Numbered from the stretch's first letter, positions 4,611 through 52,179 are shown. The stretch is DNA of 64,000 bases from Piromyces finnis finn (GCA_002104945.1 MCFH01000049.1:310001-374000); one strand, 5' to 3'. Program-made: numbers and translations. Notes: generated from the sequence alone by a model not told the origin.

Positions 4611-5355
4611 CTATATGGTGAAGCTTTGAATTGGGCTGCATCATTAATTCACAATCATGATGAATGCCTGTTAAATTATGACTCATTTGTTGCCAAGCTT
4701 AAATCTGTGTTTGGTGACAACGACTCAACGTTTGTGGCTAATCAAAAACTTCGAACTATAAAGCAAAGAAAAATCGGTGAGATTCAAAAATATATTCTTG
4801 AATTTAACCGATACTCCGATGACACCTCTTGGAACGAAAGTGCAAAAATGGACGCCTTCTTAGCTGGACTACAAGATCAAGTCGCCAATAGGATTTTAGA
4901 AATGTTTCCCGGTCCACAAACGCTATTAAATTTACAAGTTATTGCATCAAGAATCGATTCTAGAATCGATACCAACAGAAGATTTTTCAACAACAATCAT
5001 TCTAATAACACTATTCAAAACCGAAGAACTGAAGCAAATAGAAAACCTTTCACTTCAAGAAATAAGAAAACTTATGGACCGCTTTCCTCAGAAGAAAAAG
5101 CTAGAAGAATTAAGGAAAATCTCCGCCTGTATTGTGGTTCTCCAGATCATAAGTTAAGTAACTGCCCAAAAAGAAGTAAAAATGAAAAATTAGCTGGGAC
5201 TCATATTTCTAACACTACGCCTGAAAAGAAGCCTAGAATAAGATTCTCCGATAATCCCAATCTGAAACAACCAGTCTTTGAGTTCCAACTCAATACTTCC
5301 GACGTCTCCGTGAATACTAAACTACTAATTGATTCAGGATCTCAACTTAACCTAC

Positions 5356-6106
5356 TGTAAAATATTAATCTTAAAACAGATTATATATTTAACAATAAAA
5401 CAATTAAACACACGATAAAATAAAAATAGGAGTTTCTTTTTTTTAAAAATTATCTTCTTTATTAATGGTTAGAAATAAAATAACAATTACATCGATTCAA
5501 TTGATAAAATTTACATGTATTTATATTTTTTCATAATTATATTCTAATATATTATTCTATTTAAATAAACATATATTTAATATAAAATAAACAAAACTAA
5601 TCTAATTAAATAATAAAATAATAAAACTAAACTAAAACTAATTCATTATACTTTTAATTTAATTTGAGTAAACTCAAAATTGAATAAAGCTCAGGTATTA
5701 TCTATAAATTAATTTAATATTATCAATATTATTTTTAATATATTTCCTATTGAAATATAAATAAATCTATTTTTAAAACTAAGTTAAAATTATTAAACTA
5801 TTCTAAATTTAAATAAAAAAGTATATTATTATTAAACTATTCTAAAATTAAATAAAAAGTATTTAAAGTTATTATGAATATTTAAAATATTTGAAATATT
5901 TAAATTTAATTAAGATTCTTTTGTTCCTTAAATTTAAATATTTATCTTTATTTAATTTTGACGGAATTATTATAAAATAATTTATTATTAAATTATTCCA
6001 TTGAATATTAAAAATTTCATAGTTAATTTTAATAAATATTAATTTATTATTTAATAATTAATAGTTAATTATTAAATAATCTAAAGATATATATTATATC
6101 TTTACA
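5356..6106. mobile_element. Solo-LTR-like element, family 2, second copy
   Basis: TGTAAAA...ATCTTTACA termini, similar to 3879-4610. It cuts the protease frame. The flanks do not match (CCTAC vs CTAAA) and the rest of pol is absent. Confidence 0.8.
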
Positions 6107-12634: not shown

Positions 12635-13843
12635 ATGGTTGAACAATGGAGAGCTAATGTTGCTTATGCCCCAGCAGGTACTAAAGTTGAATATCAAGGT
12701 ATTATTTATGAACTTATTCAACCCCACACTTCTCAAATAACTTGGGAACCAGGTATGGTTCCAGCACTTTGGAGAGTTTGTCGTAACCAATCTGGTGCTT
12801 CTAATCATCATAGACGTCATTCTAGTTGTTCTTCATGTTCCTCTGATCATGGTCATGGCCATGGCGGTCATAATAACCATCATAATGAACCACACGGAAA
12901 ACCACAACAACCACAGCAACAATTTGGACTCTTTGGGCAAGGTCAACAACAACAACAACAACAATCATCACAACAACAATTTGGACTCTTTGGACAAGGT
13001 CAACAACAACCACCATATGGTCAAGGACCACAAGGTTATGGACAAGGTCAACAACAACAACCACCATATGGTCAAGGACCACAAGGTTATGGACAAGGTC
13101 AACAACAACCACCATATGGTCAATATGGTCAAGGACCACAAGGTTACGGACAAGGTCAACAACAACCACCATACGGTCAATATGGTCAAGGACCACAAGG
13201 TTACGGACAAGGTCAACAACAACCACCATATGGTCAATATGGTCAAGGACCACAAGGTTTCGGACAACAGCCTCCATTTGGTGGTTATGGTCAACCATCA
13301 TATGGTGGTCAATACCCCCCACAACCTTATGGACAAAATTCATATGGTGGTGGACAATATCCACCATTCCCACAAGCATTCGGACAATCTTATCAAAATA
13401 ACTATTCTTTCCCATACCAATGGGTTCGTTGGGCCGGTTACACACCAGAAAATGCCATTGCACTTTCTAATAAGAATGGTAAAACCTTTGTTGTTGCTCG
13501 TGGTCCAATAGAAGGTGGTCTTCACCCAGGTTATGCGGATCCAAATAATAATAAATGTTTTGTAGGTTATGGTGGTAAGGAATACATTTTAGATGATTTT
13601 GAAGTATTAATTTGTGATTCTTCTCGTTATATGTGGTTACCATGTACCGATCCAAAATCTATTGATGGTAAACCAATTATTGGTGGATATGAAAGTGATG
13701 GTTTAGAACTCTATGTATGCAAATGTATGCATAAAGGAATTCCATACTTTGGTAAGACAAGTGCAAGACATAGTTGTGCTAATTTTGCATACAATGAAAA
13801 AGAACGTGAATGTACTGACTTTGACGTTTTAGTCTATAAATAA
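12635..13843 (+). CDS. CBM5/12 chitin-binding module + G/Q/P/Y repeat linker + DM9 (DUF3421) lectin domain, paralog 1 (402 aa)
   Basis: N-terminus WRANVAY...GTKVEYQGIIYELIQPHTSQITWEPGMVPALW is typical of CBM5/12. The C-terminus has two DM9 repeats (W...PENA...VARGPIEGGLHPG...YGGKE...FEVL; W...GGYESDGLELYV...GK...DVL). Single exon, no signal peptide. Confidence 0.88.
   Translation: MVEQWRANVAYAPAGTKVEYQGIIYELIQPHTSQITWEPGMVPALWRVCRNQSGASNHHRRHSSCSSCSSDHGHGHGGHNNHHNEPHGKPQQPQQQFGLFGQGQQQQQQQSSQQQFGLFGQGQQQPPYGQGPQGYGQGQQQQPPYGQGPQGYGQGQQQPPYGQYGQGPQGYGQGQQQPPYGQYGQGPQGYGQGQQQPPYGQYGQGPQGFGQQPPFGGYGQPSYGGQYPPQPYGQNSYGGGQYPPFPQAFGQSYQNNYSFPYQWVRWAGYTPENAIALSNKNGKTFVVARGPIEGGLHPGYADPNNNKCFVGYGGKEYILDDFEVLICDSSRYMWLPCTDPKSIDGKPIIGGYESDGLELYVCKCMHKGIPYFGKTSARHSCANFAYNEKERECTDFDVLVYK
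12992..13261 (+). repeat. Coding tandem repeat, five units of 48-57 bp (GQGQQQPPY[GQY]GQGPQGY)
   Basis: Directly visible in DNA and protein. Confidence 0.9.
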
Positions 13844-14397
13844 GGAAAAAGCGATCATTTAAAATTTTATTAAACGTACATATGAATTTTCAACAAATTA
13901 ATAGTTTATACCACTTTTAAATTTTCCATCTTTAAAAATTAAATAAATATATTCCCTTTTTTTTTTTTTTACCAAAAAAAAAAAAAAAAACAACTCTAAT
14001 ATTTACATAAATATTAATGGCCAAACATATTTATTAAGATAATAATAATAATAAAATAACAAACTCATTATAGTATAAATAAATAAAAAAATTTTATATA
14101 CTATTCACATTTCATATTTAATAATTATCTTTTTTAAAAAAAAAAAAAAAAGAGTATTCAAATAAAAACAATTCAAAGAAAAATTGTTTAATCAAATTTA
14201 TTTAATGTGTTTATCATTAATTTATTATAAAATAATGTAAAGATAAAACTTTATACTATTTTTTATTGTGTATGTAATAATAATAATAATGACATGGTCA
14301 ATAATATAAGATTCAACTTTTTTTTAATTTAAACACTTTTGTTAAAAAATTTAATAATAATAAAAAACAATATTATCATTGTATTTCATAGAATTTG

Positions 14398-14762
<365 letters not shown>

Positions 14763-16362
14763 CTATCATTGTATTTTGTATTATTACTCTATTATCCTAC
14801 TTTCATTTATTTATTTTCTGTATGTTTTCTTTTTGTAATTTCTGGTTGGTTTCTAGCCAAGTCACGCGAAGGTATGGCCAGGTATTTCTAAGAAGTTCTT
14901 TTTTCAAGAATGCATTTAAAATATTTTACACCCTAAAAATTTTTTGATCCAAATTATTATTAAAAAAAAAAGCATTTTTTTATCAATAATTGCCACTTTA
15001 TAAAGTCGGCATTCTTTTCAAAATGGGATTGTTTTTTATATGAGATAAAACATTTTTTATTTCTTTATACCCCCATTTTAACTATTTAATAATAATTAAT
15101 ATAATTTACAATAATAATAAAAAAGTGACTTTTAAAACTTTTTAATTCCATCATGCCATATATATTAAAATTATATATTAGATTATATTGTATTATATAT
15201 ATATTAATTTTTAATTTTAATGTCATTAAATATATCAAATATATTTAATAATATAGTGTAATATATAATATAATAAATTTCTATTCAAATTGAATTGTGG
15301 TAGATTATATTATAATATATTGTATAAATAAATATTAAAATAAATAATTAAAAATATTAAGACTTTCCTTTTTTGTATATAATTTAGTGTTAAATGGATG
15401 CTTCATCCATTCTTAAACTTTGTTATTGTTAATTGAATTTTATATATATTATAATATAATGGAATATATTTAATAAAAAGAAAAGTTTAACTTTTTTTTC
15501 TTATTTTTATATATAAAATTAGCGATGGATATATGAATAAATACGATTTTGACAAGTTTTCCTAAAAAGTTTAACACTTTTGAACAGTAAAACATTATTA
15601 AAAAAGTATAAGTGTATACATTATGTATATATTATGTATTTTGCTTGAAATTTGAAACGTTGTGTAATAATGTAATGTAATGTAATAAAATGTAAGACGT
15701 CACATTTCAAAATGTTTAAAACAAATAATATTAAATATTAATTAATAAAATTGATCCTACTTTAAAAATTTAAATTAAAAATTATATTATTATTAAATAG
15801 TATTATATAATATTATACCATAATTTAAAATAAATTTAGCATTTTTTTTTTAATAAAAAATAAATAATAAAAAAGAAAATAAATAAATAATAAAAAAAAA
15901 GTTTTCATTTAAAAAAGGAAATAGTATATAAATAAAAAGGTAACAGTAAAGAATAGATTAATAAAAATATAGACATTATAACTATACATTTCTTATTTTT
16001 CTAAAAATTCATTGAAAAATATATAAAGAATTAGTATTGAAATTAGTAAAAATTCAATAGTTGATAGTTGATATCCAAAAAGAATAATTATAAACAAAAA
16101 AAACACACACATCTAATATTATATATTCAAACGAGTTAAAATTACTAAAAACTAAAAAAGTTTTTTGGTTTATGACTTTAATTTTTACCAGGATTATTTA
16201 TCAATGAATAAAATTGAATGATTTTATTAATATAACCAAAAATATTAACCCATTTTATTTTAATTTTTAATTTTAATTTTACCCATATTATATATATCAA
16301 TTTATTTAATTATTTATACAATTTTTCATTGCTGGTTTATTAATTATATAAAACTAGTCAAG

Positions 16363-17019
16363 ATGGGCGATTTATGGAAACCAAATACTTTATATGAACC
16401 AAAAGGTTTAAAAATTGAATATGAAGGTGTTATTTACGAACTTATTCAACCACATACTTCTCAATATGGTTGGGAACCAACTCAAACTCCAGCTATTTGG
16501 AAGGTTTCCGAAGACCAAGAGGGTGTCAAATTCAGACGTCAAGATGAAGAAATGAAACAAAAAATGACACTAAAAGAAAGAGATGATGTTCCATATCAAT
16601 GGGTACCATACACAGGTTCTATGCCTGAAAATGCTATTGGTATTGCCAATAAACATAAGACTTTCTATGTTGCTCGTTCCCACATTCATGGTGGTATTCA
16701 TCCAGGTTACGCTGATCAATACAATAGTAGATGTTTCATTGGTTACGGTGGTAAGGAAGAAATTTGTGAAAGATTTGAAGTTTTAGTTTGTGAACCAAAC
16801 AAATATCAATGGGTTTCATGTTCTAATATTAATGATGTTGATGGTAATTTAGTTATTGGTGGTAATGAATCTGATGGAACCCCACTTTACGTCTGTAAAT
16901 GTTATCGTGAAAAGGTTGCTTATATTGGTAAAACTTCAAAAGCAACAGACAATGCTTTTTACAGTTTCAGTGAAAAGGAACATAGAGTTAAAAAGTTTGA
17001 AGTTTTAACTTTTCTTTAA
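16363..17019 (+). CDS. CBM5/12 + DM9 lectin, paralog 2, short charged linker (218 aa)
   Basis: Same two domains (YEGVIYELIQPHTSQYGWEPTQTPAIW; GGNESDGTPLYV). Single exon, no signal peptide. Confidence 0.88.
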   Translation: MGDLWKPNTLYEPKGLKIEYEGVIYELIQPHTSQYGWEPTQTPAIWKVSEDQEGVKFRRQDEEMKQKMTLKERDDVPYQWVPYTGSMPENAIGIANKHKTFYVARSHIHGGIHPGYADQYNSRCFIGYGGKEEICERFEVLVCEPNKYQWVSCSNINDVDGNLVIGGNESDGTPLYVCKCYREKVAYIGKTSKATDNAFYSFSEKEHRVKKFEVLTFL

Positions 17020-19574
17020 ATAATTAATATTCCCATCCTCTTCCGTTCAACTCCAATTCCATTCAAGTTTATTCTAAAAAATGAGTTCCATTCTTATTCT
17101 TGATAATTCTTTTTAAGAAGAAAAAATAAAATCTCTCATTTTTAATCTTTTATTATAAATGAATAAATAACAATAATAATAATAATAATAATATATCCTT
17201 ATGGTTAATTTTCCAAAAAAAAGCCTTTTCAAAAATCATTATTTCTTTATGGTAGTAATGTGTAAATAATTAAAAAAAAAAAAAAAAAAAAAGTTATAAT
17301 AAACAAAAGAAGGCATAGTAATAATAAAAAAAAAAAAAAAAAAAGAATTAAAAAAATTTTTTTTCTTTAATTGTACATATATATAATTAAATAATCAAAT
17401 TTCTTATTATTCCACTATTATTAAATTTTCTTGTAAAAGTAATACATTTTAAAACAATAAAAAAAAAACCATTTCATAATATTAAAAGTAAAAATTGTGT
17501 TTTTTTTTTCATCCTTGTTTATTTAAGTTATTAAAGTGTAAGTAGTCAAAATTTTATGGTAATTTTTTATATTCTTTTTTTTTTTTTTTTTTTTTTGATA
17601 TATGTATTGTTGGTTATTATACACACAAATAAAAAAAAAACAAATAGACTTTATTTTTCCCTTCAAGGATATAACAAATATCATAAATCATAATAAATTG
17701 ATATTATTTTAGTAATGTAAAAAGAAATCATTTTATAAAAACATTATAGGCATAATTCTTTATGTTGTTATAAACTATAAAATGAATGTAATATATTTCC
17801 TTTTTTTTTTATTTCATCCCATCTAATAAGAATTTTTCTATAAACAATAACTATCTTGATTGCTATTACAACTACAATAGTATTATTATTCTCTTTTAAA
17901 TAATAAATAAGAAAAAAAGCTATTAACAAAAAATAATTTATCCATTTTTAAAAGATCCCTTTTTTAAAAAAGAAAACCAACTATTTTGTTTAAGCCAAAG
18001 GCATTTTAATGTTCACTTTTTTTTTTACATATTTATTAACTTTTCTATTAACTTATCTATTGACTTTTATTTATCAAATTTATTTAATTTTTATTAATTT
18101 ATTTATTTAATTATTTATCCCCATTTTTTAAATTAAAAAAGTATTTTTCAAAGTTAAATCATAAGGCAATACAACCCAAAAAGTAAACAAAACATTAATA
18201 AAAATAAATAAAACTAATATTTTTTATTATTATATAGATAAAACTTTTTTTTTTCCATCCTTTAACCACTCTTTCATTAGTTGACAGCAAGAAAACCACC
18301 ACCACCACCATCACCACTTTCAACCTTTAATTATTATTATTCCTAGCCCTATTTGACTTTGGATATAAATGAACAAAATTATATTTATTTTAATAAATAT
18401 TTTATCAATATATAAATGGATAAAAGTATCTATTTAAATAATTCATTTTGTCCCTAAATTAAATTTTTAATTATTTTATTTATCAAAGAAATTAAAAGAA
18501 TTTTTTTATTTAATTATAATTTCCTTAAACGGTAAAATATGACATTATTTATTTTACAATACAAAATGAATTACATTCATAATAAATTATATTCTATTGA
18601 ATAGTATATAATAAAGATCATTCTAACATATAATAATAAATGATTTATTCAACATAAAAAAAGATAAATCACATCACTCTATTATATAACAAATTAATTA
18701 ATGCTAAAAGTAGTAAAGTAGTATATAATATAATAATAATGTAATGGTGTATAATATATTTTAATTGTAATATTTTAATTACAATATATTAGTGATTTAT
18801 TTTATTTTAATAGTGCCATTTTTAATATATTAGTATTGTATTGTAAAACGTATCACGTAATATTATTCATTAAATTTTATTATTTATTAAAATAAATTAT
18901 TCCATATATTATCAATAATAATGTTTCTTCTTTTTTATATTAAATAAGATTTAATATCATTATTAATTTCTTACATTAAATGGATTATTTTTATAAGAAA
19001 AGCCATCACCATCTTCAAACGCTATATATTATCAATAGTATTGCAGAATAATAAAATATATAAAGAAATTAAATTATCAATATAAATAATATTTTATTTA
19101 TTTATTAATTAATAATAAATAATAACAAGAGATATTAAATAGTTATTTATTTATTAATATAATATTCATTTATTCATTTTAATTACTATTATTTATTTAA
19201 TTTCTATTTATTTATACATTTATTAATTATTACCATTTTGAAAATTGATACCACCACAAATATAAATGATCAAATAATAAAGAAAGAATTACCTCTTTTT
19301 TTAATTAATTATTAATTAATTTTTATTAAAAAATTCTAAAACTATAAAATAAACGATTTTTTCCTTTTTTATTTTTAATCTTTACAAGTTTTTTATATTA
19401 TTAAAGGTAAATAAAAAGTAAAAAAAAAAAAATTAATAATTAAAAATTTAATTATACTATAATATAATTAAAAAATATTTATATTTAAATATTTATTTAT
19501 ATATAATATTTGTTCTTTGCATTTGACAGACTTTTGATTTTTAGATTTTTAAAACAAAAAAACATTTAATCAAG

Positions 19575-20375
19575 ATGGGAGAACAATGGAGAGCTAATGT
19601 TTCTTACGGTCCAGCCGGTACCAGAGTTGAATACGAAGGTACTGTCTATGAACTTATTCAACCACACACTTCTCAAATTGGTTGGGAACCAACTATGACT
19701 CCAGCTCTTTGGAGAGTTGCTCGTCACCAAGATGGAGGTCACTCTGAACACCACTCTTCTGGTCATCACTCTGAACACCATTCCTCTGGTCATCACTCTG
19801 AACACCATTCTTCTGGTCATCACTCTGAACATCACGAACAACAACAACAACAACAACAACAACAACCACAATTCCAACAACCACCACAACAACAATTCCA
19901 ACAACAACAACAATTCCAACAACAAAATGTTTCTAACACTCCACCATACCAATGGGTTTCCTTCAACGGTACTTTCCCACAAAATGTTGTCAGTGAAAGT
20001 AACAAGCTCGGTAAGACTTTTGTTGTTGCTCGTGCTGAAGTCAGAGGTGGAAAGCACCCAGGTTACGCTGATATGAGAAACAAGAACTGTTACACTTCTT
20101 ACGGTGGTGAAGAAGTTGAATCCAAGAACTACGAAGTTTTAGTTTGTGAACCAGGTAGATACTCTTGGGTTAACTGCAACAACCCAGCTAATATTAACGG
20201 TAACCCAATTCAAGGTGGTCACGAAAGCGACAATACTCCACTTTACGTTGTCAAGGTTGAACGTGATGGTGTTCCATACTTTGGTAAGACTTCTCCAAAG
20301 TCTAGCGCTGCTTACTACGGTTTCGACCGTAAGGAACGTAAGGAAAACAACTTCCAAGTTTTAGTTTTCCATTAA
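19575..20375 (+). CDS. CBM5/12 + His-rich repeat/polyQ linker + DM9 lectin, paralog 3 (266 aa)
   Basis: Same two domains (YEGTVYELIQPHTSQIGWEPTMTPALW; GGHESDNTPLYV). Strongly biased codons (TAC/AAC/CAC/TTC) suggest high expression. Confidence 0.9.
   Translation: MGEQWRANVSYGPAGTRVEYEGTVYELIQPHTSQIGWEPTMTPALWRVARHQDGGHSEHHSSGHHSEHHSSGHHSEHHSSGHHSEHHEQQQQQQQQQPQFQQPPQQQFQQQQQFQQQNVSNTPPYQWVSFNGTFPQNVVSESNKLGKTFVVARAEVRGGKHPGYADMRNKNCYTSYGGEEVESKNYEVLVCEPGRYSWVNCNNPANINGNPIQGGHESDNTPLYVVKVERDGVPYFGKTSPKSSAAYYGFDRKERKENNFQVLVFH
19740..19835 (+). repeat. 27-bp coding tandem repeat (HSEHHSSGH) x3.5, followed by (CAA)n
   Basis: Units CACTCTGAACACCAYTCYTCTGGTCAT start at 19740, 19767 and 19794, with a partial unit at 19821. 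Confidence 0.92.
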
Positions 20376-20857
20376 ATGAATTTGTTTCGTTGAAGAAAAA
20401 AGAAAAAAAATAATTTCATAAGAAACCAAGCTTTTCGTATAAAAAAAATTATTTTATATTTGGACTATGATTATTGTTTTTTTTTAAATTTTTTTTGAAA
20501 AATATAAAATGGCTCAACATTTTATCACATAAAAAATATTATCGAATTAATTATCAAACAAAATTACGAAAAAAGAAAAAAAAGCTCAATAATAGATTTT
20601 ATTAAAAAATATTAAACAAAAAAAATGTAAATATAAAGTAATAACAACAAATTCACACACAAAAAAAAAAACTAAAAAAAGAAAAAGAAAAGAGAAGGAA
20701 TTTTTGAACCTAAATTTTCTTTAACTTTTTTTTTTATAAAAATATCGTTTTAAACTTCAAAAAAAAATCATTGTATAAAAATTTGCAAATAATTATCGAA
20801 TTTACATTTATTTAATAAAAAAAAATATTTAAAAAATTAACTTTTTTTTTTTTACTG

Positions 20858-21039
20858 AGTCGAATTAAACTTTTTTTAAATATTTTGTGGATTCATTTTT
20901 ATTTTTCATTTATTAAATTATGTGGATTTATTTTTTTGGTTGGTTGATGGTAAGGAAAAATAAAAAAAAAAAAAAAAAGGTATATTAATTTGTTATATTT
21001 TTATTTATTAGAATAAAAGAGTACAATTTATTTACAGTT
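20858..21039 (+). repeat. About 185-bp dispersed direct repeat, copy 1
   Basis: AGTCGAATTAAAC...GGTTGGTTGATGGTAAGG...TTTACAGTT is nearly identical to 33563-33750. Confidence 0.88.
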
Positions 21040-21109: not shown

Positions 21110-22258
21110 AAAGATCTCAAAGGGAATTCAATCAAAGCGCAATATTATGATGATAATAAATTTATTGAAACTAAAGATTTTATTAAATTATGTTATGAGT
21201 ACCCAGAGTTTGCCTATGGCTTCTACTGGCTATTGAAAGCAAGAAGCGGATATAAGTTGGATGCTAGAGTTGCCAAAGCTGCTAAATTTGTTGATCCAGT
21301 TTGTCCTAACTACTGTCCATGTTGCAAGTGTGGAGATCAAAGTATTAAACATTGGTTATTAGATTGTCCAACATTTAGAGATATCCGTATTAAACATTAT
21401 GATTCCATAGTCCAGCTATTAAATTTTTTCAGTCAACGTAATTCCAATAGTCCTATCAATAATAATGAAATTGATAATATCAGTAGAGATAGCAATAACA
21501 GTAATAGTAATAGTAACAATAATAATTATAACAATAGTAATAATAACAATAGTAGTAATAGTAATAATAGAAATAGTAATAATAACAATAGTAGTAATAG
21601 AAATAATAATATTAATAATGATAGCAATAGTGAAGATAATAATTCTAATTTAGATAGTAATTTAGTTAATGATAGTAATAGTTCTAATAATCCGGTGAAT
21701 ATTAATGTGTATGATTATTCTAGTGTGTGCAGTAAAATATTTAAATTCCTTCTTGGGGGAAGAAGTTTTAACAATATTAATTACAATTCAAGGGAATGGA
21801 AAGAACTTTGTAAGCGTCAGATTCAATCTGGTACTAATGAAGGAACACCATTCTTGACGGTAACCGCGGAACTTCTAACCAAAATCATGCCTTTTGCTAT
21901 TGGCCAGCAATGGTCAATGTTCAAAAGGTTTGAAGCAACATCCAAGAGCGTCAATGCTGAAGAAACAGTAAGACAGGCCAGGAGGGCCAGCGCAACCAAT
22001 GGAGATCATAATTTTGTTCCATGACAAAATTTTGATCTTTGGCTCGGTGTCCCATTGGAAGTCAAATACAATTATTATACTTTAGTATGATAGTGGCTTT
22101 CTTACTTTAATTAAAATTACTAGAATACATTATACCCAATTTTTATTCATTTGTGTTTATTAAACATATTTTTTTTTATTTTTATTTATTTTTAATTTTT
22201 TATTACATGTATTATAATTTTAATTAAATTAATAATAAAGTTTAAAATATTTGATGCC

Positions 22259-23324: not shown

Positions 23325-26300
23325 ATGTCAGTCCTTTATATTAAAGATAAGAATTATATCAGACGTGGTACCCGGTCTTATGGTATCCCCTTAGATGATA
23401 TTCGCTCCTTCTTTATCCGTGGTATTCGATCATGGTCAGTAAATATGCTATGGGAAAAACTCGAGGTTATTCTAGAAGATAAATTTAATTCAGTTATTAG
23501 TGTTAAATATTTTCAAACTTTCAATGATCACTTTTTCTTAGTCAAGGTTCATGGTTCATCAAAAGATTGTATTAAAATCTTACACATGTTAAAGAAGAAA
23601 CTTTCAGTTACCTCAATTTCCTTTTCAGCTCGTAGTAGAAGGAATCACAAATACACTTTTTCCACTCTCAAACGTAAAATTTTAGTTTCTAATAAACATC
23701 AACATTCTATTCAACAATCATTTCAACAATCAGTTCAACAATCAGTTCAACAATCTCATCAACAATCCGATCTTCAACAAGATCTTCAACAGGATCTTCA
23801 ACAAGTTTCCCATCATGAAAATATTCCAGATCTACAGCAAACACAATTTCAATCTCAACATTCAACAATTAATTCTAATAGTTCTATCAACTCTGATAAC
23901 AGTTCAATAGTTGATAGTTCTTCAGTTTCACAGCCATCTAGTAATAGTTCTACTTATTCCTCTGATGCATCATCCATTAATAACGATGACTTTAATAATA
24001 ATAATAATAGCAACGATTCTTCCTCATCCAACAAGCCTGATAACTTTTCTTTTTGTCTTAGTTGGAACACCAATGGGTGGAATCATGAAAAGAGAGATAG
24101 TATTAGCTATTTCACAGCTATTTTCAAACCATTATTCTTATGTTTCCAAGAAACTGGTAATGGTTCTGGATCGAATACAGATTATCCTTGTCGTGTTACT
24201 TTGCGAAACTATAGACACTTTTTCAAGAAAGCTGACGAATCAGTTCCGGGAATGAGAGGTTTATATTTAGGTTTTCACAATTCATGTCAAGCCTCACTTG
24301 AAAACTTCTCTGGAAAGTATATTATTTCTATTTATACTTTTAGTCTCTGGAATAGATTCAAATGCTCGATTGGAAATGTTTATATGCCTCATAGTCATCA
24401 CAACATCTATGTTGATCATGCAAAGTTAGAAGTTCGCTTGTGGTTACAAACTCATTCATCCCATCCATCGATTCTTGTTGGTGATTTTAATATGTCTAAA
24501 GTAAAATTATCCAACTGGTTATCAACTAATGGATTAGGAGATTGGGAAATTCTTCCGCTTAGAGGGTCTACTATCTCTTGGACTCGAGGTGATCAATCTT
24601 CCGATATTGACCATGCTCTTATCAATTCGAAGATGAAAGATCTTATTCACTCAGGATCATTTATAAATAATTTTTATCCTGTATCAGACCATAAGCCACT
24701 TCTTATTAATGGTAAAATTATTCCTATGGAAGATTTTTCTAATGACTTTAATGTTCCTAAGAAAATTCTGAAATGGAATAGATTAAAATGTATTGAGGAA
24801 AAGGAATCTATTATCAGTCATAATAAATTCCAAATTCTTTCAGCAAAATTCAACGATCCTAATGTTTCTACAGATGAACTTTCCAAAGAGTTTACTTCAA
24901 CTGCTTTTTCAATTGCAGACGAGCTCAGTATTACTTCAGCAAATAATGTTATAAAGTCTTCATTTCATATTTCACAACAAATTTTTAATCTCCAAAAAAT
25001 CAAAATGAAGTTGTATAAGAGATTTAAAAAAGAAAGAATTTATGATATAGATGAATTTATTAAAAGAATTAAAATCTACCGTAAGCTCATTGATTACATC
25101 CACAAAAGATGTAATGAATTTAGGAAACAAGAATATCTTCATTGGATTAAAACAGGATGTGAGTATATGAAGAGTCATAATCCTAAGAAGGCCTGGAAAT
25201 GGATCAAGAAAACTGCAAAAATTGGAAAAGATTCTTTCTTTATTGCTCAACCAATTAAAAACAAAAATGGAGAATTAGTTGTTGCTACGGAAGAACAACT
25301 AGATGTGTGGCATGATCATTTCGAAAAGCTTGCATCAGATCCAAGTGGTGTAAGTCTTGATTTGGAGCATTGGTATGAAGAACCAACGAATAAACGTTTT
25401 TCACTCCCTATGCTTGATGAATGGGATATCAACCAAGATATTAGTATTGATGAAGTCAAGTCAGCTATCCTCTCTACTCCGAATTATAAAGCATCAGGTC
25501 CGGATGGTATTCCAATTGAATTTTACAAAGCATTAATTCCATCAAGTAATGATTCTAATAATGCTACAGGTAATAATTCTTCCGGTAATACCACTTCAGA
25601 TAATGATGCTTATGGTTTAAATTTTATTCTTAAATTATTCAACCGTACTTGGAATGGAGATTTCCCCAACTCATGGAATGAATCCAGTATTGTTTCCATT
25701 CCTAAGAAGGGAGATTTGACAGATTGTGATAACTATCGAGGTATATCACTTATCAATAATGGTATTAAGTTGATTTCCAAAATTGTCACCACTAGAATCT
25801 CAGAATATGGTCTAAAGAATAATTTCATTAGACCTGAACAATTTGGTTTTCGAAAAAAGGAAGAAAGTATCAGTCTTTTCATTTCAATCCAAGAAATATG
25901 CCGTAGACGTCAATTAGATAATAAAGAGACATATTTGGCCTTTTTAGATCTCAGGAAAGCATACGATTCAGTCCCAATCGGTAATATTCTCCATAAATTA
26001 GATTGTTTAGGAATCCGAGGTAAGAGTTTACAATTCATCAAAAATTTATATTTAACATCTAAGGCTAATGTCAAATTAGATGGACAATTCTCGAAATCTT
26101 TTGATGTGAAGAAAGGAGTCCGTCAAGGTTGCCCTCTTTCTCCTATTCTCTTTAATCTCTTTATTAATGATATATTTAAAGAGTGTGAAGATCTCGGAGT
26201 CAGTTTAGGTGACACTCGATGCTGTGGTGGACTTTTTGCAGATGATATAGTTATTTGTGCTCCAACAAGAGGATGCTTAAAAAAGATGCTTAGAAGAGTT

Positions 26301-27851
26301 AATGAATGGGCCTTGTATAATGAAATGGAATTTGGTATCCAGAAGTGTTCAACGATGGTGATTCGTCCTGAATCAATAGAAAATCAGAACAAGAGAGATC
26401 CAACATTTTACTTAGCAGGACAACCCATTCCAACTACTGATTGTTATACTTATCTTGGTGTTCCATTTGATAAGAATCTGTCCCTTAAACCAGTTATTAA
26501 AGCTCTTAATAACAAGGTTTTGAAAGGGCTTTTTTCAGTCAGTAAATTCTTAAGAAATCCTAATATTCCTATTCCCTTCAAAAAGCTAGTACTTAACTCA
26601 CAAGTGATTAGCAGAGTTTCATACTTTGCACCATTACTTGGATCCAACAAAGCCAGGTCTAGAATTGCACAGAAGCATGTTAACAAAGGAATACGATGGG
26701 TTGCCGGAGTTCATAAAGCTGTATCGTTTATATCTTTATACTCTATTTCAAAAGATTTGAATATTCCTCCATTGTCAGCCAAATGTGCATTAGCTCAGGT
26801 TAGATGTTTTAACAAATGGAAAAACTCAAATTGTATTATCTCATACCTTGCCAATTACATTCCTAAATTTAGAAAATACACGTGGTGCAAATCAAGTAGG
26901 ACACTTGATAAAAAACTAAAGAAACATGGAGATGTTAAAGCAGTTAAAAACTTTTATTGGAAAGATCTCAAAGGGAATTCAATCAAAGCGCAATATTATG
27001 ATGATAATAAGTTTATTGATACTAAAGATTTTATTAAATTATGTTATGAGTACCCAGAGTTTGCCTATGGCTTCTACTGGCTATTGAAAGCAAGAAGCGG
27101 ATACAAGTTGGAAGCTAGAGTTGCCAAAGCTGCCAAATTTGTTGATCCAGTTTGTCCTAACTACTGTCCATGTTGCAAGTGTGGAGATCAAAGTATTAAA
27201 CATTGGTTATTAGATTGTCCAACATTTAGAGATATCCGTATTAAACATTATGATTCCATAGTCCAGCTATTAAATTTTTTCAGTCAACGTAATTCCAATA
27301 GTCCTATCAATAATAATGAAATTGATAATATCAGTAGAGATAGTAATAATATTAATAGTAATAGTAACAATTGTAATAATAACAATAGTAATAGTAACAA
27401 TAGTAATAATAACAATAGTAGTAATAGAAATAATAATATTAGTAATGATAGCAATAGTGAAGATAATAATTCTAATTTAGATAGTAATTTAGTTAATGAT
27501 AGTAATAGTTCTAATAATCCGGTGAATATTAATGTGTATGATTATTCTAGTGTGTGCAGTAAAATATTTAAATTCCTTCTTGGGGGAAGAAGTTTTAACA
27601 ATATCAATTACAATTCAAGGGAATGGAAAGAACTTTGTAAGCGTCAGATTCAATCTGGTACTAATGAAGGAACACCATTCTTGACGGTAACCGCGGAACT
27701 TCTAACCAAAATCATGCCTTTTGCTATTGGCCAGCAATGGTCAATGTTCAAAAGGTTTGAAGCAACATCCAAGAGCGTCAATGCTGAAGAAACAGTAAGA
27801 CAGGCCAGGAGGGCCAGCGCAACCAATGGAGATCATAATTTTGTCCCATGA
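23325..27851 (+). CDS. LINE polyprotein: APE endonuclease + reverse transcriptase + C-terminal CCHC zinc finger (1508 aa)
   Basis: APE motifs SWNTNG, CFQET, LVGDFN, SDIDH, SDH. RT motifs GPDGIP, NYRGISL, QFGFR, FLDLRKAYDSV, GVRQGCPLSP, FADD, YLG. C-terminal CPCC...SIKHWLLDC. Confidence 0.97.
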   Translation: MSVLYIKDKNYIRRGTRSYGIPLDDIRSFFIRGIRSWSVNMLWEKLEVILEDKFNSVISVKYFQTFNDHFFLVKVHGSSKDCIKILHMLKKKLSVTSISFSARSRRNHKYTFSTLKRKILVSNKHQHSIQQSFQQSVQQSVQQSHQQSDLQQDLQQDLQQVSHHENIPDLQQTQFQSQHSTINSNSSINSDNSSIVDSSSVSQPSSNSSTYSSDASSINNDDFNNNNNSNDSSSSNKPDNFSFCLSWNTNGWNHEKRDSISYFTAIFKPLFLCFQETGNGSGSNTDYPCRVTLRNYRHFFKKADESVPGMRGLYLGFHNSCQASLENFSGKYIISIYTFSLWNRFKCSIGNVYMPHSHHNIYVDHAKLEVRLWLQTHSSHPSILVGDFNMSKVKLSNWLSTNGLGDWEILPLRGSTISWTRGDQSSDIDHALINSKMKDLIHSGSFINNFYPVSDHKPLLINGKIIPMEDFSNDFNVPKKILKWNRLKCIEEKESIISHNKFQILSAKFNDPNVSTDELSKEFTSTAFSIADELSITSANNVIKSSFHISQQIFNLQKIKMKLYKRFKKERIYDIDEFIKRIKIYRKLIDYIHKRCNEFRKQEYLHWIKTGCEYMKSHNPKKAWKWIKKTAKIGKDSFFIAQPIKNKNGELVVATEEQLDVWHDHFEKLASDPSGVSLDLEHWYEEPTNKRFSLPMLDEWDINQDISIDEVKSAILSTPNYKASGPDGIPIEFYKALIPSSNDSNNATGNNSSGNTTSDNDAYGLNFILKLFNRTWNGDFPNSWNESSIVSIPKKGDLTDCDNYRGISLINNGIKLISKIVTTRISEYGLKNNFIRPEQFGFRKKEESISLFISIQEICRRRQLDNKETYLAFLDLRKAYDSVPIGNILHKLDCLGIRGKSLQFIKNLYLTSKANVKLDGQFSKSFDVKKGVRQGCPLSPILFNLFINDIFKECEDLGVSLGDTRCCGGLFADDIVICAPTRGCLKKMLRRVNEWALYNEMEFGIQKCSTMVIRPESIENQNKRDPTFYLAGQPIPTTDCYTYLGVPFDKNLSLKPVIKALNNKVLKGLFSVSKFLRNPNIPIPFKKLVLNSQVISRVSYFAPLLGSNKARSRIAQKHVNKGIRWVAGVHKAVSFISLYSISKDLNIPPLSAKCALAQVRCFNKWKNSNCIISYLANYIPKFRKYTWCKSSRTLDKKLKKHGDVKAVKNFYWKDLKGNSIKAQYYDDNKFIDTKDFIKLCYEYPEFAYGFYWLLKARSGYKLEARVAKAAKFVDPVCPNYCPCCKCGDQSIKHWLLDCPTFRDIRIKHYDSIVQLLNFFSQRNSNSPINNNEIDNISRDSNNINSNSNNCNNNNSNSNNSNNNNSSNRNNNISNDSNSEDNNSNLDSNLVNDSNSSNNPVNINVYDYSSVCSKIFKFLLGGRSFNNINYNSREWKELCKRQIQSGTNEGTPFLTVTAELLTKIMPFAIGQQWSMFKRFEATSKSVNAEETVRQARRASATNGDHNFVP

Positions 27852-28165: not shown

Positions 28166-30523
28166 ATGGATCAAGAAAACTGCAAAAATTGGAAAAGATT
28201 CTTTCTTATTGCTCAACCAATTAAAAACAAAAATGAGGAATTAGTTGTTGCTACAGAAGAACAACTAGAAGTGTGGCATGATCATTTCGAAAACCTTGCA
28301 TCAGATCCAAGTGGTGTAAGTCTTGATTTGGAGCATTGGTATGAAGAACCAATGAATAAACGTTTTTCACTTCCTATGCTTGATGAGTGGGATATCAACC
28401 AAGATATTAGTATTGATGAAGTCAAATCAGCTATCCTCTCTACTCCAAATTATAAAGCATCAGGTCCGGATGGTATTCCAATTGAATTTTACAAAGCATT
28501 AATTCCATCAAGTAATGATTCTAATAATGCTACAGGTAATAATTCTTCCGGTAATACTACTTCAGATAATGATGCTCATGGTTTAAATTTTATTCTTAAA
28601 TTATTTAACCGTATTTGGGATGGAGATTTCCCCAACTCATGGAATGAATCCAGTATTGTTTCTATTCCTAAGAAGGGAGATTTGACAGATTGTGATAACT
28701 ATCGAGGTATATCACTTATCAATAATGGTATTAAGTTGATCTCCAAAATTGTCACCACTAGAATCTCAGAATATGGTCTAAAGAATAATTTCATTAGACC
28801 TGAACAATTTGGTTTTCGAAAAAAGGAAGAAAGTATCAGTCTTTTCATTTCAATCCAAGAAATATGCCGTAGACGTCAATTAGATAATAAAGAGACATAT
28901 TTGGCCTTTTTAGATCTCAGGAAAGCATATGATTCAGTCCCAATCGGTAATATTCTCCATAAATTAGATTGTTTAGGAATCCGAGGTAAGAGTTTACAAT
29001 TCATCAAAAATTTATATTTAACATCTAAGGCTAATGTCAAACTAGATGGACAATTCTCGAAATCTTTTGATGTGAAGAAAGGAGTCCGTCAAGGTTGCCC
29101 ACTTTCGCCTATTCTTTTTAATCTCTTTATTAATGATATATTTAAAGAGTGTGAAGATCTCGGAGTCAGTTTAGGTGACACTCGATGCTGTGGTGGACTT
29201 TTTGCAGATGATATAGTTATTTGTGCTCCAACAAGAGGATGCTTAAAAAAGATGCTTAGAAGAGTTAATGAATGGGCCTTGTATAATGAAATGGAATTTG
29301 GTATCCAGAAATGTTCAACGATGGTGATTCGTCCTGAATCAATAGAAAATCAGAACAAGAGAGATCCAACATTTTACTTAGCAGGACAACCCATTCCAAC
29401 TACTGACTGCTACACTTATCTTGGTGTTCTATTTGATAAGAATTTGTCCCTTAAACCAGTAATTAAAACTCTCAATAACAAGGTTTTGAAAGGACTTTTC
29501 TCAGTCAGTAAATTCTTAAGAAATCCTAATATTCCTATTCCCTTCAAAAAACTAGTACTTAACTCACAAGTGATTAGCAGAGTTTCATACTTTGCACCAT
29601 TACTTGGATCCAACAAAGCTAGGTCTAGGATTGCTCAGAAGCATGTTAACAAAGGAATACGATGGATTGCCGGAGTTCATAAAGCTGTATCGTTTATATC
29701 TTTATACTCTATCTCAAAAGATTTGAATATTCCTCCATTGTCAGCCAAATGTGCATTAGCTCGGGTTAGATGTTTTAACAAATGGAAAAACTCAAATTGT
29801 ATTATCTCACACCTTGTCAATTACATTCCTAAATTTAGAAAATACACGTGGTGCAAATCAAGTAGGACACTTGATAAAAAACTAAAGAAGCATGGAGATA
29901 TTAAAGCAATTAAAAACTTTTATTGGAAAGATCTCAAAGGGAATTCAATCAAAGCGCAATATTATGATGATAATAAATTTATTGAAACTAAAGATTTTAT
30001 TAAATTATGTTATGAATACCCAGAGTTTGCCTATGGCTTCTACTGGCTATTGAAAGCAAGAAGCGGATACAAGTTGGAAGCTAGAGTTGCCAAAGCTGCC
30101 AAATTTGTTGATCCAGTTTGTCCTAACTACTGTCCATGTTGCAAGAGTGGTGTTCAAAGTATTAAACATTGGTTATTAGATTGTCCAACATTTAGAGATA
30201 TCCGTATTAAACATTATGATTCCATAGTCCAGCTATTAAATTTTTTCAGTCAACGTAATCCCAACAGTCCTATCAATAATAATGAAAATGTTAATATCAG
30301 TAGAAATAGCAATAATATTAATAGTAATAGTAACAATAGTAGTAATAATAGTAATAATAGTAATAGTTCTAACAATCCGGTGAATATTAATGTATATGAT
30401 TATTTTAGTGTATGTAATAAAATATTTAAATACCTTCTTGGAGGAAGAAGTTTTAATAATATCAATTACAATTCAAGGGAATGGAAAGAACTTTGCAAGT
30501 ATCAGATTCAATCTGACACTTGA
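28166..30523 (+). pseudogene. RT/C-terminal remnant of the older LINE copy
   Basis: Near-identical to ORF 23325 but lacks the endonuclease. The N-terminal MDQENCK... comes from a 1-nt deletion, and there is a deletion or frameshift near 30520. Confidence 0.9.
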
Positions 30524-39157: not shown

Positions 39158-40999
39158 AATTACCTTTGTTATTTTTAAATTGAAATAAATAAAGATGGAT
39201 TTAGTTGCTATTCCAGATTTCGAAGCAGGTGCTATGGAAAACTGGGGTTTAGTAACCTTCCGTACTGTCGCTTTACTTTTCGATGAAAAGAAAAGCTCTG
39301 TTGCTAGTAAGGAACGTGTTTGTACCACTGTTGCCCACGAACTTGCTCATCAAGTTAGTAGATCTACCTTATTAATAAATATCTCAAAATTGTTAAACTA
39401 TTTTAAAAGTATTAACTAATCATCCCTTTTTAAAAATTGTAATTAACATTATTATTAATAACTATAGTGGTTCGGTAACTTAGTTACTATTGATTGGTGG
39501 AGTGACTTATGGCTTAATGAAGGTTTTGCTACTTTTGTTGGTACTTTAGCTACTGATCATCTTTACCCAGAATGGAAAATTTTCACTTCATTTGTTGTTG
39601 ATGAATTACAAAGTGCTTTGAATTTGGATGGTCTTCGTAGTTCCCACCCAGTTAGAGTTGAAATTAATAAAGCTACCGAAGTTGATCAAATCTTTGACTT
39701 AATTAGGTATATATAGTTTATTTTTAAAATAAATCTAAAAATAAATAAATAAAATATATATATATATCAAATAAGTATTTGAATATACATTAAATAAATA
39801 GTAATTTTTATATTCATTTTCAATAAATATAAAAATATAGTTACGAAAAGGGTGCTACTATTATTAGAATGCTTAATGCTTGTCTTACTGAAGAAAAATT
39901 CATGAATGGTGTTCGTATTTACTTACAACGTCATAAATACGGTAATACTGTTACTAAGGATTTATGGAATGCTTTAAGTGAATCAAGTGGAATTGACGTT
40001 GAAAAGTTAATGGGTTCCTGGATTATGGATGTTGGGTACAGTATTTAATTTATTTTTATATTTTAATAAGTATGCGTATTATTAATTTTTTTTTATTAAC
40101 TCTATATATTTCCATTTATTTTACATATATAATTCAAAATAGTTACCCAGTTGTTACCATAGAAAACAGTACAGAAACTAATAATGAATGTACTCTTGAA
40201 TTAACTCAAAAGCGTTTCCTTTCTTCTGGTAACATGACACCAGAAGAAGAAGCTAAATATGCAACTTGGTGGATTCCATTAGGTATTACTACTCATGCCT
40301 CACCAAATGTTCCATTAGATAATATCTTAACTGAAAAGAAACAAACTATTACTGTTCCATTCCCAGAAGCTAATAACAAATTCATTAAGTTAAATTACAA
40401 TGAAACTGGTATGTACCGTGTCAAATATCCAAAGGAACTCTTAAACACCATTGGTGAAATGATTCAAAAGGGATTAGAAGATAAATCAAAGGAAGTCATT
40501 GGTGTTAGTGACCGTATTAGCATTATTGCTGATATTTTCGCTCTTGCTAAGAATGGTACTGAAAACACTGATAATGCTCTCGATTTATTAAAATACTTTG
40601 AAAAGGAAACCGATTATAAGTAAATATTAAATACTCCTATACTATTATTTTATTTTAAAAATCATTAATTTAAAAATATCAAAACTTTATAAAAAAAAAA
40701 ATAGTGTATTATCCCAAATTCACCTTAAGGTATGTGAATTAAAGTCTGTCTGGTACAACAAGGACAATAAATTCTTAGAAGCTTTAAGTAAACTTGTTCT
40801 TAAGATTTTCTCACCACTTGCTGAAAAGTATGGTTTCGACTACTCTCCAAGCGACTCATTTATTGATGCTAAGATGAGAACATTAGTTCTTAGAGCTGCT
40901 GGTTGCTACGGTGATAAAAAGTAAGTTTAATTAAATCAACTAAACATTTTTTTTTTTTATAAAAATTTTAACGAAATTAAAATAAAAAAATATTATTTG

Positions 41000-48968: not shown

Positions 48969-51900
48969 TTATACGGAATTAATAGATCGACTTTCAATAA
49001 TTAAGTCAATATTATAGTTATAACTTTGAAGAAGGGCTTCAGCTTGTGCATAGTTATTATGTGTTCTTAGCATTACCCATCTTATTTTTTCTTGATTTAT
49101 CATAGTTTCAAGATATTTGTTACATGGTTCATAACAATGATTTTTAATCTGATAGAAAAATAATAAAATTCAATTAGAATTTCATATTTCTATTATTATT
49201 ATTTATTTCAATTTTTATATTTAAATTTATTTGTAGGATTAAATATAATTTACCTGTTGATATTTATTCAAATTCATCTTTTTAATGGATACTTTAAATG
49301 AACTACTAACTGGTCGATGATCAGATGCAGTACACTCATGTCTTTGATAATTTAATTGCTTAACTGAACCCCGGTATAAAATCTAGTTATAATTATATAT
49401 ATTATATGTAATATGATATAGTTAATATAAAACACCTACAACATAAAATATTTAATATATTATATTATTATTTACTCTATCACACCACGATGGAATTCTT
49501 TGTTTTTCCGATGTATCATAATGATTAAATCCAATATCATATTTAAAGGTTGGTGGGAAATTAATTTTTCCTTCAGTTAAAGGATAGAGTGGAAAACCGG
49601 TATCCGTAGAATGAATATTATGGAATTGGTCCATCTTAATTAATTCATCATATCTTCCTTCATTAGCCATTTTGATAATATCATCTCTAGTTAAATTGTT
49701 AATTGGATCAATTCTATAATTCATATCACCTAATATATAGATAATTCAAATAAAAATCAGTATAACATCATTAAAAAATAAAATATATCTATATATGCAT
49801 TTTATTTATTCTTTATTAAAAATATTTATAAGTTATATAGTATACATACCAAACCAAAAGACATTTTCATAATCCATAATTTGTGAACCATCACCACCAT
49901 TAACATAACAACATGGTTTATCATGGGGCGGGAATTTTGTTTCATTCATTATAGTAACTACATCATTATTTCTGGCAACAACTTGATCTTGATGAGCTGC
50001 CAAGTGAGTATTTATAATACAAAATGATGAATCATCAATTAACATTCTCAAAGCAATTGAACCCTAAATATACGATTATTTTCAAAATATATATATATGA
50101 TATATATTGAAATAAAATAAAATTAATAATCATTCATAAATATTTTTTTTATCATTTATGCATGAAGTAAAATTGACAGTAGATAATTAATTATTTCAAT
50201 AAATTTCTATTTAATACCTTATTTCCATGATAACCCTTAAGACCAGTTTCTACTGTATCAACATGGATGCATGATATATGTTCTGTTAAAGTTGGTTTAA
50301 CAAAAACAGTTAAGAAAAGACCTACCATTTGAGTACAACTGATATTTACGTATCTTTCATTTTGAGAATTTAATAAATTACTAGTAATGGCATCCACCCA
50401 AATTTGTTGTCTATTATCTAATTTTTCCTTTTTGCTCTTCTTTTTTGCCTTCTTAAAGAATGATTCTTAAAAAGAAAAAAAAAAAAAAAAAATTATATAT
50501 ATAATTTTAAACGTTAATATCATTCAAAACTTTAATATTACTAAAAAAATTTATAAATATTAAACTTACTTGCATTAACCGCTTTGCTATTGATCGATAA
50601 AATTTTATATTCAAGTTAATAATCTATAGTATATAACATTATAAATATATATGTGTAATATCTTATTGAAACTTAATTTTTACCTTTCAAGGTCTACGAT
50701 TTCTTGTAAACCGACTATAATAATATCTGGGGAATTAATAACTCTGAACCAATTATTAAAGAATTGTCTATTAAAGTCGTCTGATAGTAATTCTTGTGGT
50801 TTGGTAGAATCACAATTATAAGTGGTAACAAATACTGAAAGATCTGTTCTTTCTGAATAATAAGATTCTTGATCTTTAATTAAATTATCTTATATAAAAT
50901 AAAAGGATACAAATATTATGTAATCATTCAATGATTAATACAATATATTAAAATAATAATAGTATTATTATTTAAAAGTTTAAAAAAAACTTACTAATAT
51001 AATCTTCAGATAAAAAGGCATCCCAAAAATGAACATCGCCATCTTCCGATAAACTAGCAACAACAGAAAGTGATGAGTTTGCAATAGAAGTGTATGGAGG
51101 AACTAATGCATAGGGATAAAATTGGTCACGAGTTAATTGAACAACACCTGAATGGAAATGAGCCTCAAAATCTTTAATTTTCCTCCATGGTTTTACCGAA
51201 GAATCAAAAACACATATTTTACCTGTAGATAATCCAACCCAAACATGCTTATCATTTACTGTAAGAATAGATGTAATTTTATAATATGACACACTAAAGG
51301 ATTCCTTAGCTACAATATTTTCTGTATCCCATATTGTAATTTTTCCATCATCATGACCAGTATAAATTTCTTTACTATTTAATCCTGCTTCCGCAATGCA
51401 AGTTATTTTTCCCATCAATACCTTTAAATTAATAGTTTTTTTATTTGCAAAATGTGGGCATGGACCTAAAGCTGTAATTGATTTTTCGCTACACAACCAT
51501 AATTTATCATCTAAAACATAAGCATGTTCAATTTCAGGTATATCGCTAAGATTATATTCAATAGTTGGTTGATGGCTTAAAGAAAAATCGTTAGTTGTAT
51601 CATGTCTAGTCCAAATGGCAACATTTTTTTCAGTTACAGCCCATATTTTATCATTCCTGTAAAATATACCAATAACTGGATAGGATGATAATATGTGTGT
51701 TTGATTAATTCGCGAAGTATTAACATCAATTTCATAGATAACACCTTTATCACAGCCTACCCAAACAACATTGCCTTCATCAACTAAATAATGACCCGGA
51801 ACAAGTAAAATACTAGTAATTCTAATCTTTTCATCTATTGCCACCATATTACTAGGCATTCCTGTCTTTGTATTATATACTGAAAGATTTGAGCTACCAG

Positions 51901-52144
51901 AAAATAGATATTGACTACAAAATGTAATATATTTTGAATGATGTTTTGACGATAATTCAATTTTACTATAGCCATCAGCATATGGTGTAGCTCTATTAGC
52001 TTTTGATGCGTCAACATTAATAACAGCACGCCTTGAATTTATTTTATCACCTAAACTATTTACTGTTGGGATAGCATTATTAAGATGAATATTATCAATT
52101 TGAATTTGATTATGAAGATTAGGACGTTCGGGAATTGGTGGAGG

Positions 52145-52179
<35 letters not shown>

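Follow-up and report, generated by a model that had tools for sequence, protein, structure and literature searches.

Three intronless open reading frames (ORFs) of 402, 218 and 266 amino acids, here called g1, g2 and g3, follow one another in the same orientation on the plus strand of a 64,000-nucleotide stretch of the genome of the anaerobic gut fungus Piromyces finnis finn (GCA_002104945.1, MCFH01000049.1:310001-374000; this whole stretch is referred to as the window, Table 1). They are separated by spacers of 2.52 kb (g1-g2) and 2.56 kb (g2-g3), close to the approximately 2.5 kb given in an earlier note on this DNA, and the protein encoded by each begins with a CBM5/12 module and ends with a two-repeat DM9 module, the two being joined by a low-complexity linker that is variable. 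This architecture, which the same note had described for three co-oriented genes, is borne out by the ORFs and by Pfam, where CBM_5_12 is found at residues ~4-47 with 41-49 bits (E 1e-10 to 5e-13) and DM9 with 83-102 bits (E 1e-23 to 2e-29), both of them exceeding in all three proteins the gathering cut-off of 26.2 bits. Besides these two families, Pfam gave no catalytic domain or other significant family in g1-g3, as the note had also stated, and no pore-forming or other toxin domain, the proteins stopping right after DM9. Pairwise identity among the three proteins is 48-53%, with conservation concentrated in both modules. The linkers are unrelated: that of g1 has a His/Ser/Cys-rich patch followed by ~170 residues of G/Q/P/Y repeats (PPYGQYGQGPQGYGQGQQQ), that of g2 consists of 25 charged residues, and that of g3 of HSEHHSSG repeats and poly-Q. 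We hold with high confidence that g1-g3 are genuine, selected members of a fungal CBM5/12-DM9 family and, judged from sequence, the trio is a derived gut-fungal branch of this fungus-wide family, being soluble, provided with one sugar site and triplicated.

The earlier note had reported that none of the three proteins has a signal peptide, and several lines of indirect evidence agree with it. The CBM fold starts already at residue 3-5 in g1-g3. Within the first 40 residues the top 8-residue stretch scores 0.4-1.1 on the Kyte-Doolittle scale, and no 17-residue stretch above 0.5 on this scale was found anywhere in the three proteins, that is, neither a signal peptide nor a hydrophobic segment. 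The DNA upstream of g1-g3 is AT-rich and no usable ORF was found in it. Nearly all orthologues share a start of the type 'MG[DE]xW', and in the two that have an N-terminal extension this is polar and Gln-rich; the lack of a leader is common to the family as a whole. Furthermore, a 62%-identical orthologue is present on one contig of 921 bases and on another of 901 bases, which come from different JGI samples. Their AT-rich leaders measure 135 and 115 nt; in both, a TAA stands in frame two codons 5' of the ATG, and the 3' end is the same, 105 nt past the stop codon. These two contigs look like full-length mRNAs, and many further relatives are found on contigs scarcely exceeding their coding sequence. 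Four sequencing runs hold 30-39% of the sampled words (of 15000-20900), the RNA or DNA kind of these runs being only guessed. N-myristoylation of the 'MG' start was also considered and is unlikely: g1 begins with 'MV', and the PROSITE-type N-myristoylation pattern disallows Asp or Glu following the Gly.

The CBM5/12 module resembles the chitin-binding domain of Bacillus circulans ChiA1 (PDB 1ed7; E values in Table 1), with ~56% identity over 43 residues as counted from the printed alignment. In g3, residues W5, Y11, Y20, Y25 and W46 are identical to the ChiA1 core aromatics W656, Y662, Y670, Y675 and W696, and W37 is identical to the surface ligand-binding W687; the core aromatics and the W687 equivalent are invariant across g1-g3. 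Trp687 of ChiA1 has been described as having the main role in ligand binding, and the roles of the core aromatics have been described likewise (PMC3701571). In the AlphaFold model of g2 (mean pLDDT 87.8), the CBM superposes on 1ed7 with a TM of 0.79 and an rmsd of 1.6 over 45 residues (Foldseek). With the ligand residues conserved and the module under purifying selection (see below), the chitin binding that had been attributed to this CBM is plausible. The bacterial domain is a C-terminal appendage of a secreted enzyme, whereas that of g1-g3 constitutes the extreme N-terminus of a leaderless non-enzyme. A recent bacterial transfer of the CBM is not needed as an explanation, given that the CBM-DM9 fusion is also found in chytrids and basidiomycetes, although no dedicated CBM phylogeny was made.

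An exhaustive phmmer search of the family gave 1740 matches at E <= 0.001. Of 166 proteins collected, 54 have both modules, and these fall into two classes, long and short. The long forms (~300-470 residues, 27 clusters including P0062, P0016, P0018, P0036 and P0092; alignment A3) have between the modules a conserved 19-21-residue hydrophobic segment rich in Gly, Ala and Leu, of the type IGGGLLAGAALLGGGFxAY, with the flanks WYDLD..RKKQLE and YKKHK.EEE; among them are the Agaricomycetes Pleurotus, Sphagnurus and Rhizoctonia and the Chytridiomycota Quaeritorhiza and Cladochytrium. The short forms are without the segment and comprise all gut-fungal members together with Botryobasidium, Tulasnella and Globomyces. 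In a maximum-likelihood tree built on the DM9 module, the short forms from outside the gut fungi are scattered inside the long-form clade, and this scatter points to repeated segment loss. The maximum linker hydropathy is -0.6 to -1.8 in g1-g3 versus 1.4-2.4 in the long forms. In the AlphaFold model of the Pleurotus protein, the CBM is predicted with confidence and the linker is disordered. The hydrophobic segment forms a low-confidence helix without packing on either domain, and a confident 28-residue helix, conserved in the long forms, runs into DM9. On the basis of this model, the hydrophobic segment of the long forms is probably a single membrane span. That most fungi have a hydrophobic, probably membrane-spanning segment between the modules speaks against the crosslinking of chitin and mannan, proposed in the earlier note, as the ancestral job of the family.

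According to Nagy et al. (2023, PMC10282164), the only discussion of the family that we came across, an Agaricomycete CBM5/12 + DUF3421/DM9 orthogroup is single-copy, conserved, developmentally expressed and functionally uncharacterised, is highly expressed in mycelium and mature stipe, and was linked by its authors to wall chitin; a membrane segment is not mentioned in the passage considered here. The trio shares with this orthogroup (Coprinopsis cinerea protein 413423) the same modules in the same order, a leaderless start at the CBM and the lack of a catalytic domain. The mushroom and chytrid proteins differ in their length of ~300-470 aa, in being mostly single copy, in having the hydrophobic segment and the long helix, and in the Lys present in both DM9 repeats, whereas the gut-fungal proteins have no segment, a Tyr in repeat 1, and three tandem copies plus a paralogue without CBM. 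The earlier note had allowed for the fusion being widespread and already characterised: it is widespread, in Agaricomycetes and Chytridiomycota, but the orthogroup is functionally uncharacterised. The fusion is then not special to this locus, and what is new is the gut-fungal loss both of the segment and of one sugar site, and the old syntenic triplication. In the literature, we found nothing specific on DM9, DUF3421 or CBM12 in anaerobic fungi.

The C-terminal 140 residues of the trio proteins align over their full length with the two-repeat oyster lectin CGL1 (phmmer), and DM9 of the g2 model superposes on CGL1 (5id8) with a TM of 0.83 (Foldseek). In CGL1, site A is formed by Asp22, Lys43, Glu59, His52 and Phe126, and the weaker site B by Lys114, Glu130, Tyr123 and Phe55, with no counterpart of Asp22 (PMC4932603). 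In oyster CgDM9CP-1, D22A and K43A each abolish mannose binding (PMC5712788). We tabulated the site columns over 21 gut-fungal members and 35 other fungal CBM-DM9 proteins. In repeat 1 of the gut-fungal members, the Lys43 position is occupied by Tyr in 21 of 21, the Asp22 position by S, A, P, T or K, with no acidic residue, and the loop is 2-3 residues shorter than in CGL1. This Tyr-type repeat 1 is common to all other gut-fungal DM9 proteins examined, whereas 31 of the 35 other fungal CBM-DM9 proteins retain the Lys in repeat 1 too. As for repeat 2, the K114 and E130 equivalents are each present in all 21 gut-fungal members, an aromatic residue stands at the Y123 position in 18 and at the F126 position in 17 (at Y123/F126 in 21 of 21), and the loop matches the repeat-1 loop of CGL1 in length and has Glu or Asp in the place of Asp22 in every member (21/21). 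Among the trio, g1 has Tyr in place of Lys in repeat 1 and E-K-E in repeat 2, g2 has Y116 at the K43 equivalent and E169, K190 and E206 as the retained repeat-2 site, and g3 has the site pattern SNYYYE/EDKYFE. We infer that, of the two sites, gut fungi keep that of repeat 2 as a complete acid-Lys-Glu site, while that of repeat 1 has been lost or given another specificity. The trio thus resembles oyster CGL1/CgDM9CP-1 (PDB 5id8, 5mh1) in the two-repeat fold, the absence of a signal peptide and the K114/E130/aromatic platform of repeat 2, and differs from it in that D22 and K43 of site A are replaced (by A/S and Tyr) and in the extra N-terminal CBM. The view of DM9 as a mannose lectin, taken in the earlier note, stands in part: one mannose-type site is plausible from the conserved residues, but not a canonical two-site lectin, with Lys changed to Tyr in every gut-fungal member.

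A whole-genome search covering 232 contigs and 56,455,805 bases found the trio twice, in the contig that holds the window (C177) and at C50:12579-20303. Over 3.4-3.7 kb, both copies show 0 mismatches and 2-10 indels relative to each other, so that C50 most likely represents one and the same locus assembled redundantly, and a count of six gene copies in the genome was consequently rejected. A fourth DM9 paralogue, of 315 aa and without CBM, lies in the C68:791358-791834 region (L007:1495-2442, minus strand). Many gut samples contain its orthologues (P0034 cluster), and Anaeromyces robustus probably has one too (P0191). Among named relatives, the nearest to the trio come from Piromyces sp. E2, where they are entered as 'carbohydrate-binding module family 12 protein'; a dictyostelid origin, as the AT-rich sequence with its poly-Q/N might suggest, is rejected by the homologues found. 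Contig KZ150878 of Piromyces sp. E2 has three co-oriented CBM + DM9 genes of 424, 222 and 264 residues in the same order. In the DM9 tree the gut-fungal clade has a support of 100/98; g1 groups with the 424-aa E2 gene (100/100), g3 with the 264-aa one (100/100), and g2 stands beside the 222-aa group. Because g1-g3 pair one to one with the syntenic E2 trio, the triplication is, by this comparison of sequences, old and maintained, and predates the split of Piromyces sp. E2 and this genome. The local expansion put forward in the earlier note is therefore wrong in the sense of a recent one. The g1 orthologue of Piromyces sp. E2 has a different linker, equally Q/N/P/G/Y-rich.

We estimated dN/dS by Nei-Gojobori against the Piromyces sp. 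E2 orthologues, with the extreme base composition as a caveat on the values. For g1, g2 and g3 respectively, dN/dS was 0.16, 0.57 and 0.14 in the CBM, 0.20, 0.32 and 0.46 in DM9, and 0.63, 0.40 and 0.33 in the linker, which indicates that both folded domains are under purifying selection. It might be supposed that the three genes derive by duplication from a membrane-protein gene that had lost its membrane segment and that they are now decaying or without function, with the missing hydrophobic segment, the lost sugar site and the retroelements all around the locus as marks of it. However, none of the frames is broken, each gene has an orthologue in Piromyces sp. E2, relatives of the trio occur across many gut samples, and in both domains dN/dS stays <0.6. 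This conservation largely refutes decay, which we consider extremely improbable.

DM9 modules are also found in other settings in gut fungi. Neocallimastix and Piromyces sp. E2 have tandem DM9 proteins, and a signal peptide precedes several DM9 modules in P0024/P0171. On 20 contigs from several gut samples there is an uninterrupted 579-residue ORF encoding DnaJ, DnaJ-X and DM9 (P0027; L019:2069-3808, also L020, L021 and L022), whose DM9 is 59% identical to that of g3 and has the same site pattern. This genome does not have the DnaJ-X/DM9 fusion; its DnaJ-X gene, at C158:372829-374133 (minus strand), stands alone. The one-site DM9 subtype is, as far as domain composition indicates, used in both secreted-type and cytosolic-type contexts. 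Additionally, a protein of 586 aa on a 1761-base JGI contig (P0030) contains a subtilase fragment, Chitin_bind_1 (CBM18) and two DM9 modules. In this protein DM9 is joined for a second time, and independently, to a chitin-binding module, CBM18 being unrelated to CBM5/12.

The explanation that we tentatively favour is that the trio proteins are soluble, galectin-like adaptors for chitin plus mannosides that act on fungal wall material after non-classical release. The ancestral family would have had a leaderless ChiA1-type CBM5/12, a probable membrane span and a two-repeat DM9. Gut fungi would have swapped the hydrophobic segment for hydrophilic low-complexity linkers, which would give soluble proteins, and would have remodelled the repeat-1 site, with the change of Lys to Tyr and the loss of the acidic loop residue, keeping the acid-Lys-Glu site of repeat 2. 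The gene was then triplicated before Piromyces sp. E2 and this genome split, and the copies now differ mainly in linker type. The proteins would be made in the cytosol and may exit non-classically, or upon lysis or sporangium breakdown. Once outside, the CBM would anchor them to the crystalline chitin of the fungal wall, either their own or a neighbour's, and DM9 would present one mannose-type site, so that they would serve as an adaptor between chitin and mannosylated glycoconjugates and not as an enzyme or a toxin.

Leaderless proteins with a comparable way of life exist. Galectin-3, the chimera-type galectin, is a leaderless lectin with a Pro/Gly/Tyr-rich repetitive tail that is made in the cytosol and acts within cells as well as outside them; the G/Q/P/Y repeat linker of g1 is comparable to this tail, but fold and ligand are unrelated and no homology is claimed. 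Native oyster CGL1 is N-acetylated at Ala2, as for a cytosol-made protein, yet it acts on cell surfaces (PMC4932603, PMC5712788). In fungi, Cts1 of Ustilago maydis is a leaderless chitin-active protein that works outside the cell, with the difference that it is a GH18 enzyme that leaves through the cytokinesis fragmentation zone, assisted by Jps1 (PMC12167484).

Several points weigh against such adaptors. In the oyster protein, the single change K43A is enough to abolish mannose binding, and by analogy a protein with Tyr at this position may not bind mannose at all; the stronger site assigned to repeat 2 in the trio is itself deduced from conserved residues. The DM9 fold is also found in a non-lectin cytosolic protein, the nematode motility protein MFP2 (Foldseek). 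In another gut fungus, a DnaJ/DnaJ-X co-chaperone of cytosolic type carries the same one-site subtype, a fusion that points to a cytosolic DM9. In the long forms, the modules probably lie on opposite sides of a membrane, one of them facing the cytosol. The C68 paralogue consists, in this order, of Gly-rich GGPxGGF repeats, an acidic stretch, a hydrophobic segment (NLLIGGAILGGLWIM), KKKKRVKK and DM9, with 6 basic residues on the DM9 side of the hydrophobic segment versus 2 on the opposite one, and this strongly basic flank likewise suggests a cytosolic DM9. The flank charges of the long forms favour the same side weakly, the DM9 side having the greater number of Lys/Arg in 18 of 28 cases and the smaller in 8, with a tie in 2.

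The features that point to the cytosol, together with the absence of a leader or hydrophobic segment in g1-g3, would suit a fungal DM9 that binds ligands or proteins in the cytosol, and soluble proteins that remain there and respond only once chitin or luminal glycans are exposed to it, whether in wound or membrane-damage sensing like that of cytosolic galectins or in the handling of nascent chitin and chitosomes. We regard such a cytosolic role as possible but rather unlikely. Crystalline chitin is not normally in the cytosol, yet the CBM is under purifying selection and has an intact binding face. The flank asymmetry of the long forms is weak, amounting to 87 versus 65 basic residues with both flanks also acidic, and the multi-DM9 proteins with a signal peptide have the same site pattern, so that the subtype is not confined to the cytosol. 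A more far-reaching possibility, which we consider improbable, is that the whole CBM5/12-segment-DM9 family works as a linker or sensor from wall to cytoplasm, with the CBM outside in the wall and DM9 inside. Fungal DM9 would then be a cytosolic ligand-sensing module and not an extracellular lectin, and the soluble trio and the DnaJ-DM9 protein would be cytosolic derivatives that watch for misplaced chitin or mannose-type glycans, as galectins do for damaged endomembranes.

The earlier note had also thought of defence, and the trio could be imagined as lectins against grazers or competitors that are stored in the cytoplasm, like the leaderless mushroom fruiting-body lectins, that become active when rumen protozoa or others ingest or lyse the fungus. 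The proteins are leaderless, small, multi-copy and provided with a lectin domain and variable linkers, natterin-type toxins and oyster immune receptors have DM9 as their lectin part, and many transcript-sized contigs in gut samples suggest good expression. Nevertheless, we find this quite unlikely. Natterin-type toxins share with the trio a DM9-like lectin module, N-terminal in their case, but they carry an aerolysin-like pore-forming domain, and neither this nor another toxic domain was found in the trio by Pfam; with the cytoplasmic defence lectins of fungi only the leaderless state is common. Selection on the paralogues, which are old and syntenic, is purifying and not diversifying, and one of the two sugar sites was lost rather than diversified. 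Moreover, the likely grazers are ciliates, which are not known to expose chitin. In mushrooms the family is single-copy, developmentally expressed and linked by the authors to wall chitin (PMC10282164).

Should the trio consist of adaptors on wall chitin, as we tentatively propose, it would concern a structure that is central to anaerobic gut fungi, whose walls are rich in chitin and which are studied for biomass conversion. CBM5/12-DM9 proteins are conserved from chytrids to mushrooms and are well expressed, with no known function. In the gut-fungal trio the family occurs naturally in a soluble form with one site, which should be easy to express, and this gives a simple way to ask what the ligand of fungal DM9 is and whether a leaderless chitin binder arrives at the wall. 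Furthermore, a probable membrane span between the two sugar-binding modules in most members changes the view of the whole family.

Table 1. Features of the trio and of its surroundings, in positions of the window.
Feature	Position	Strand	Basis
g1, 402 aa: CBM5/12, long G/Q/P/Y-repeat linker, DM9 pair	12635..13843	+	Pfam CBM_5_12 E 3e-12, DM9 E 3e-25
g1 CBM5/12, residues 4-46	12644..12772	+	Pfam
g1 low-complexity linker, without hydrophobic segment	12785..13411	+	translation; maximum hydropathy -0.63
g1 two-repeat DM9, residues 260-402	13412..13840	+	own HMM and Pfam
g2, 218 aa: CBM5/12, short charged linker, DM9 pair	16363..17019	+	Pfam E 1.5e-10 and 1.9e-29
g2 CBM5/12, residues 5-47	16375..16503	+	Pfam; PDB 1ed7 E 1.2e-8
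g2 two-repeat DM9, residues 76-218	16588..17016	+	phmmer alignment to CGL1
g3, 266 aa: CBM5/12, HSEHHSSG-repeat/poly-Q linker, DM9 pair	19575..20375	+	Pfam E 4.5e-13 and 1.4e-23
g3 CBM5/12, residues 4-46	19584..19712	+	Pfam; PDB 1ed7 (ChiA1) E 5e-11
g3 two-repeat DM9, residues 124-266	19944..20372	+	own HMM
Ty3-type gag fragment ORF	4626-5360		
Poly-Ile/Tyr/Leu ORFs in the g1-g2 spacer	14379-14838		
Unassigned 263-aa ORF directly downstream of g3	21233-22024		
LINE-type RVT_1 ORF	23325-27851		
LINE-type RVT_1 ORF	28166-30523		
ERAP1-like aminopeptidase piece	40072-40623		
WD40 protein	50972-53269	-	
LINE-type RVT_1 ORF	58984-63507	-	

The window is very AT-rich, with 12-33% G+C, and the trio is surrounded by retroelements, namely the Ty3-type gag fragment and the three LINE-type RVT_1 ORFs, two of which are of ~1507 aa. 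The ORF that follows g3 directly has a Cys-rich start and an Asn/Ser-rich middle. The poly-Ile/Tyr/Leu ORFs of the g1-g2 spacer are long AT-rich simple repeats and not genes. Farther along, host genes, for example those of the ERAP1-like aminopeptidase and the WD40 protein, are seen as separate exons, in loose agreement with the intron-rich neighbours that the earlier note had described.

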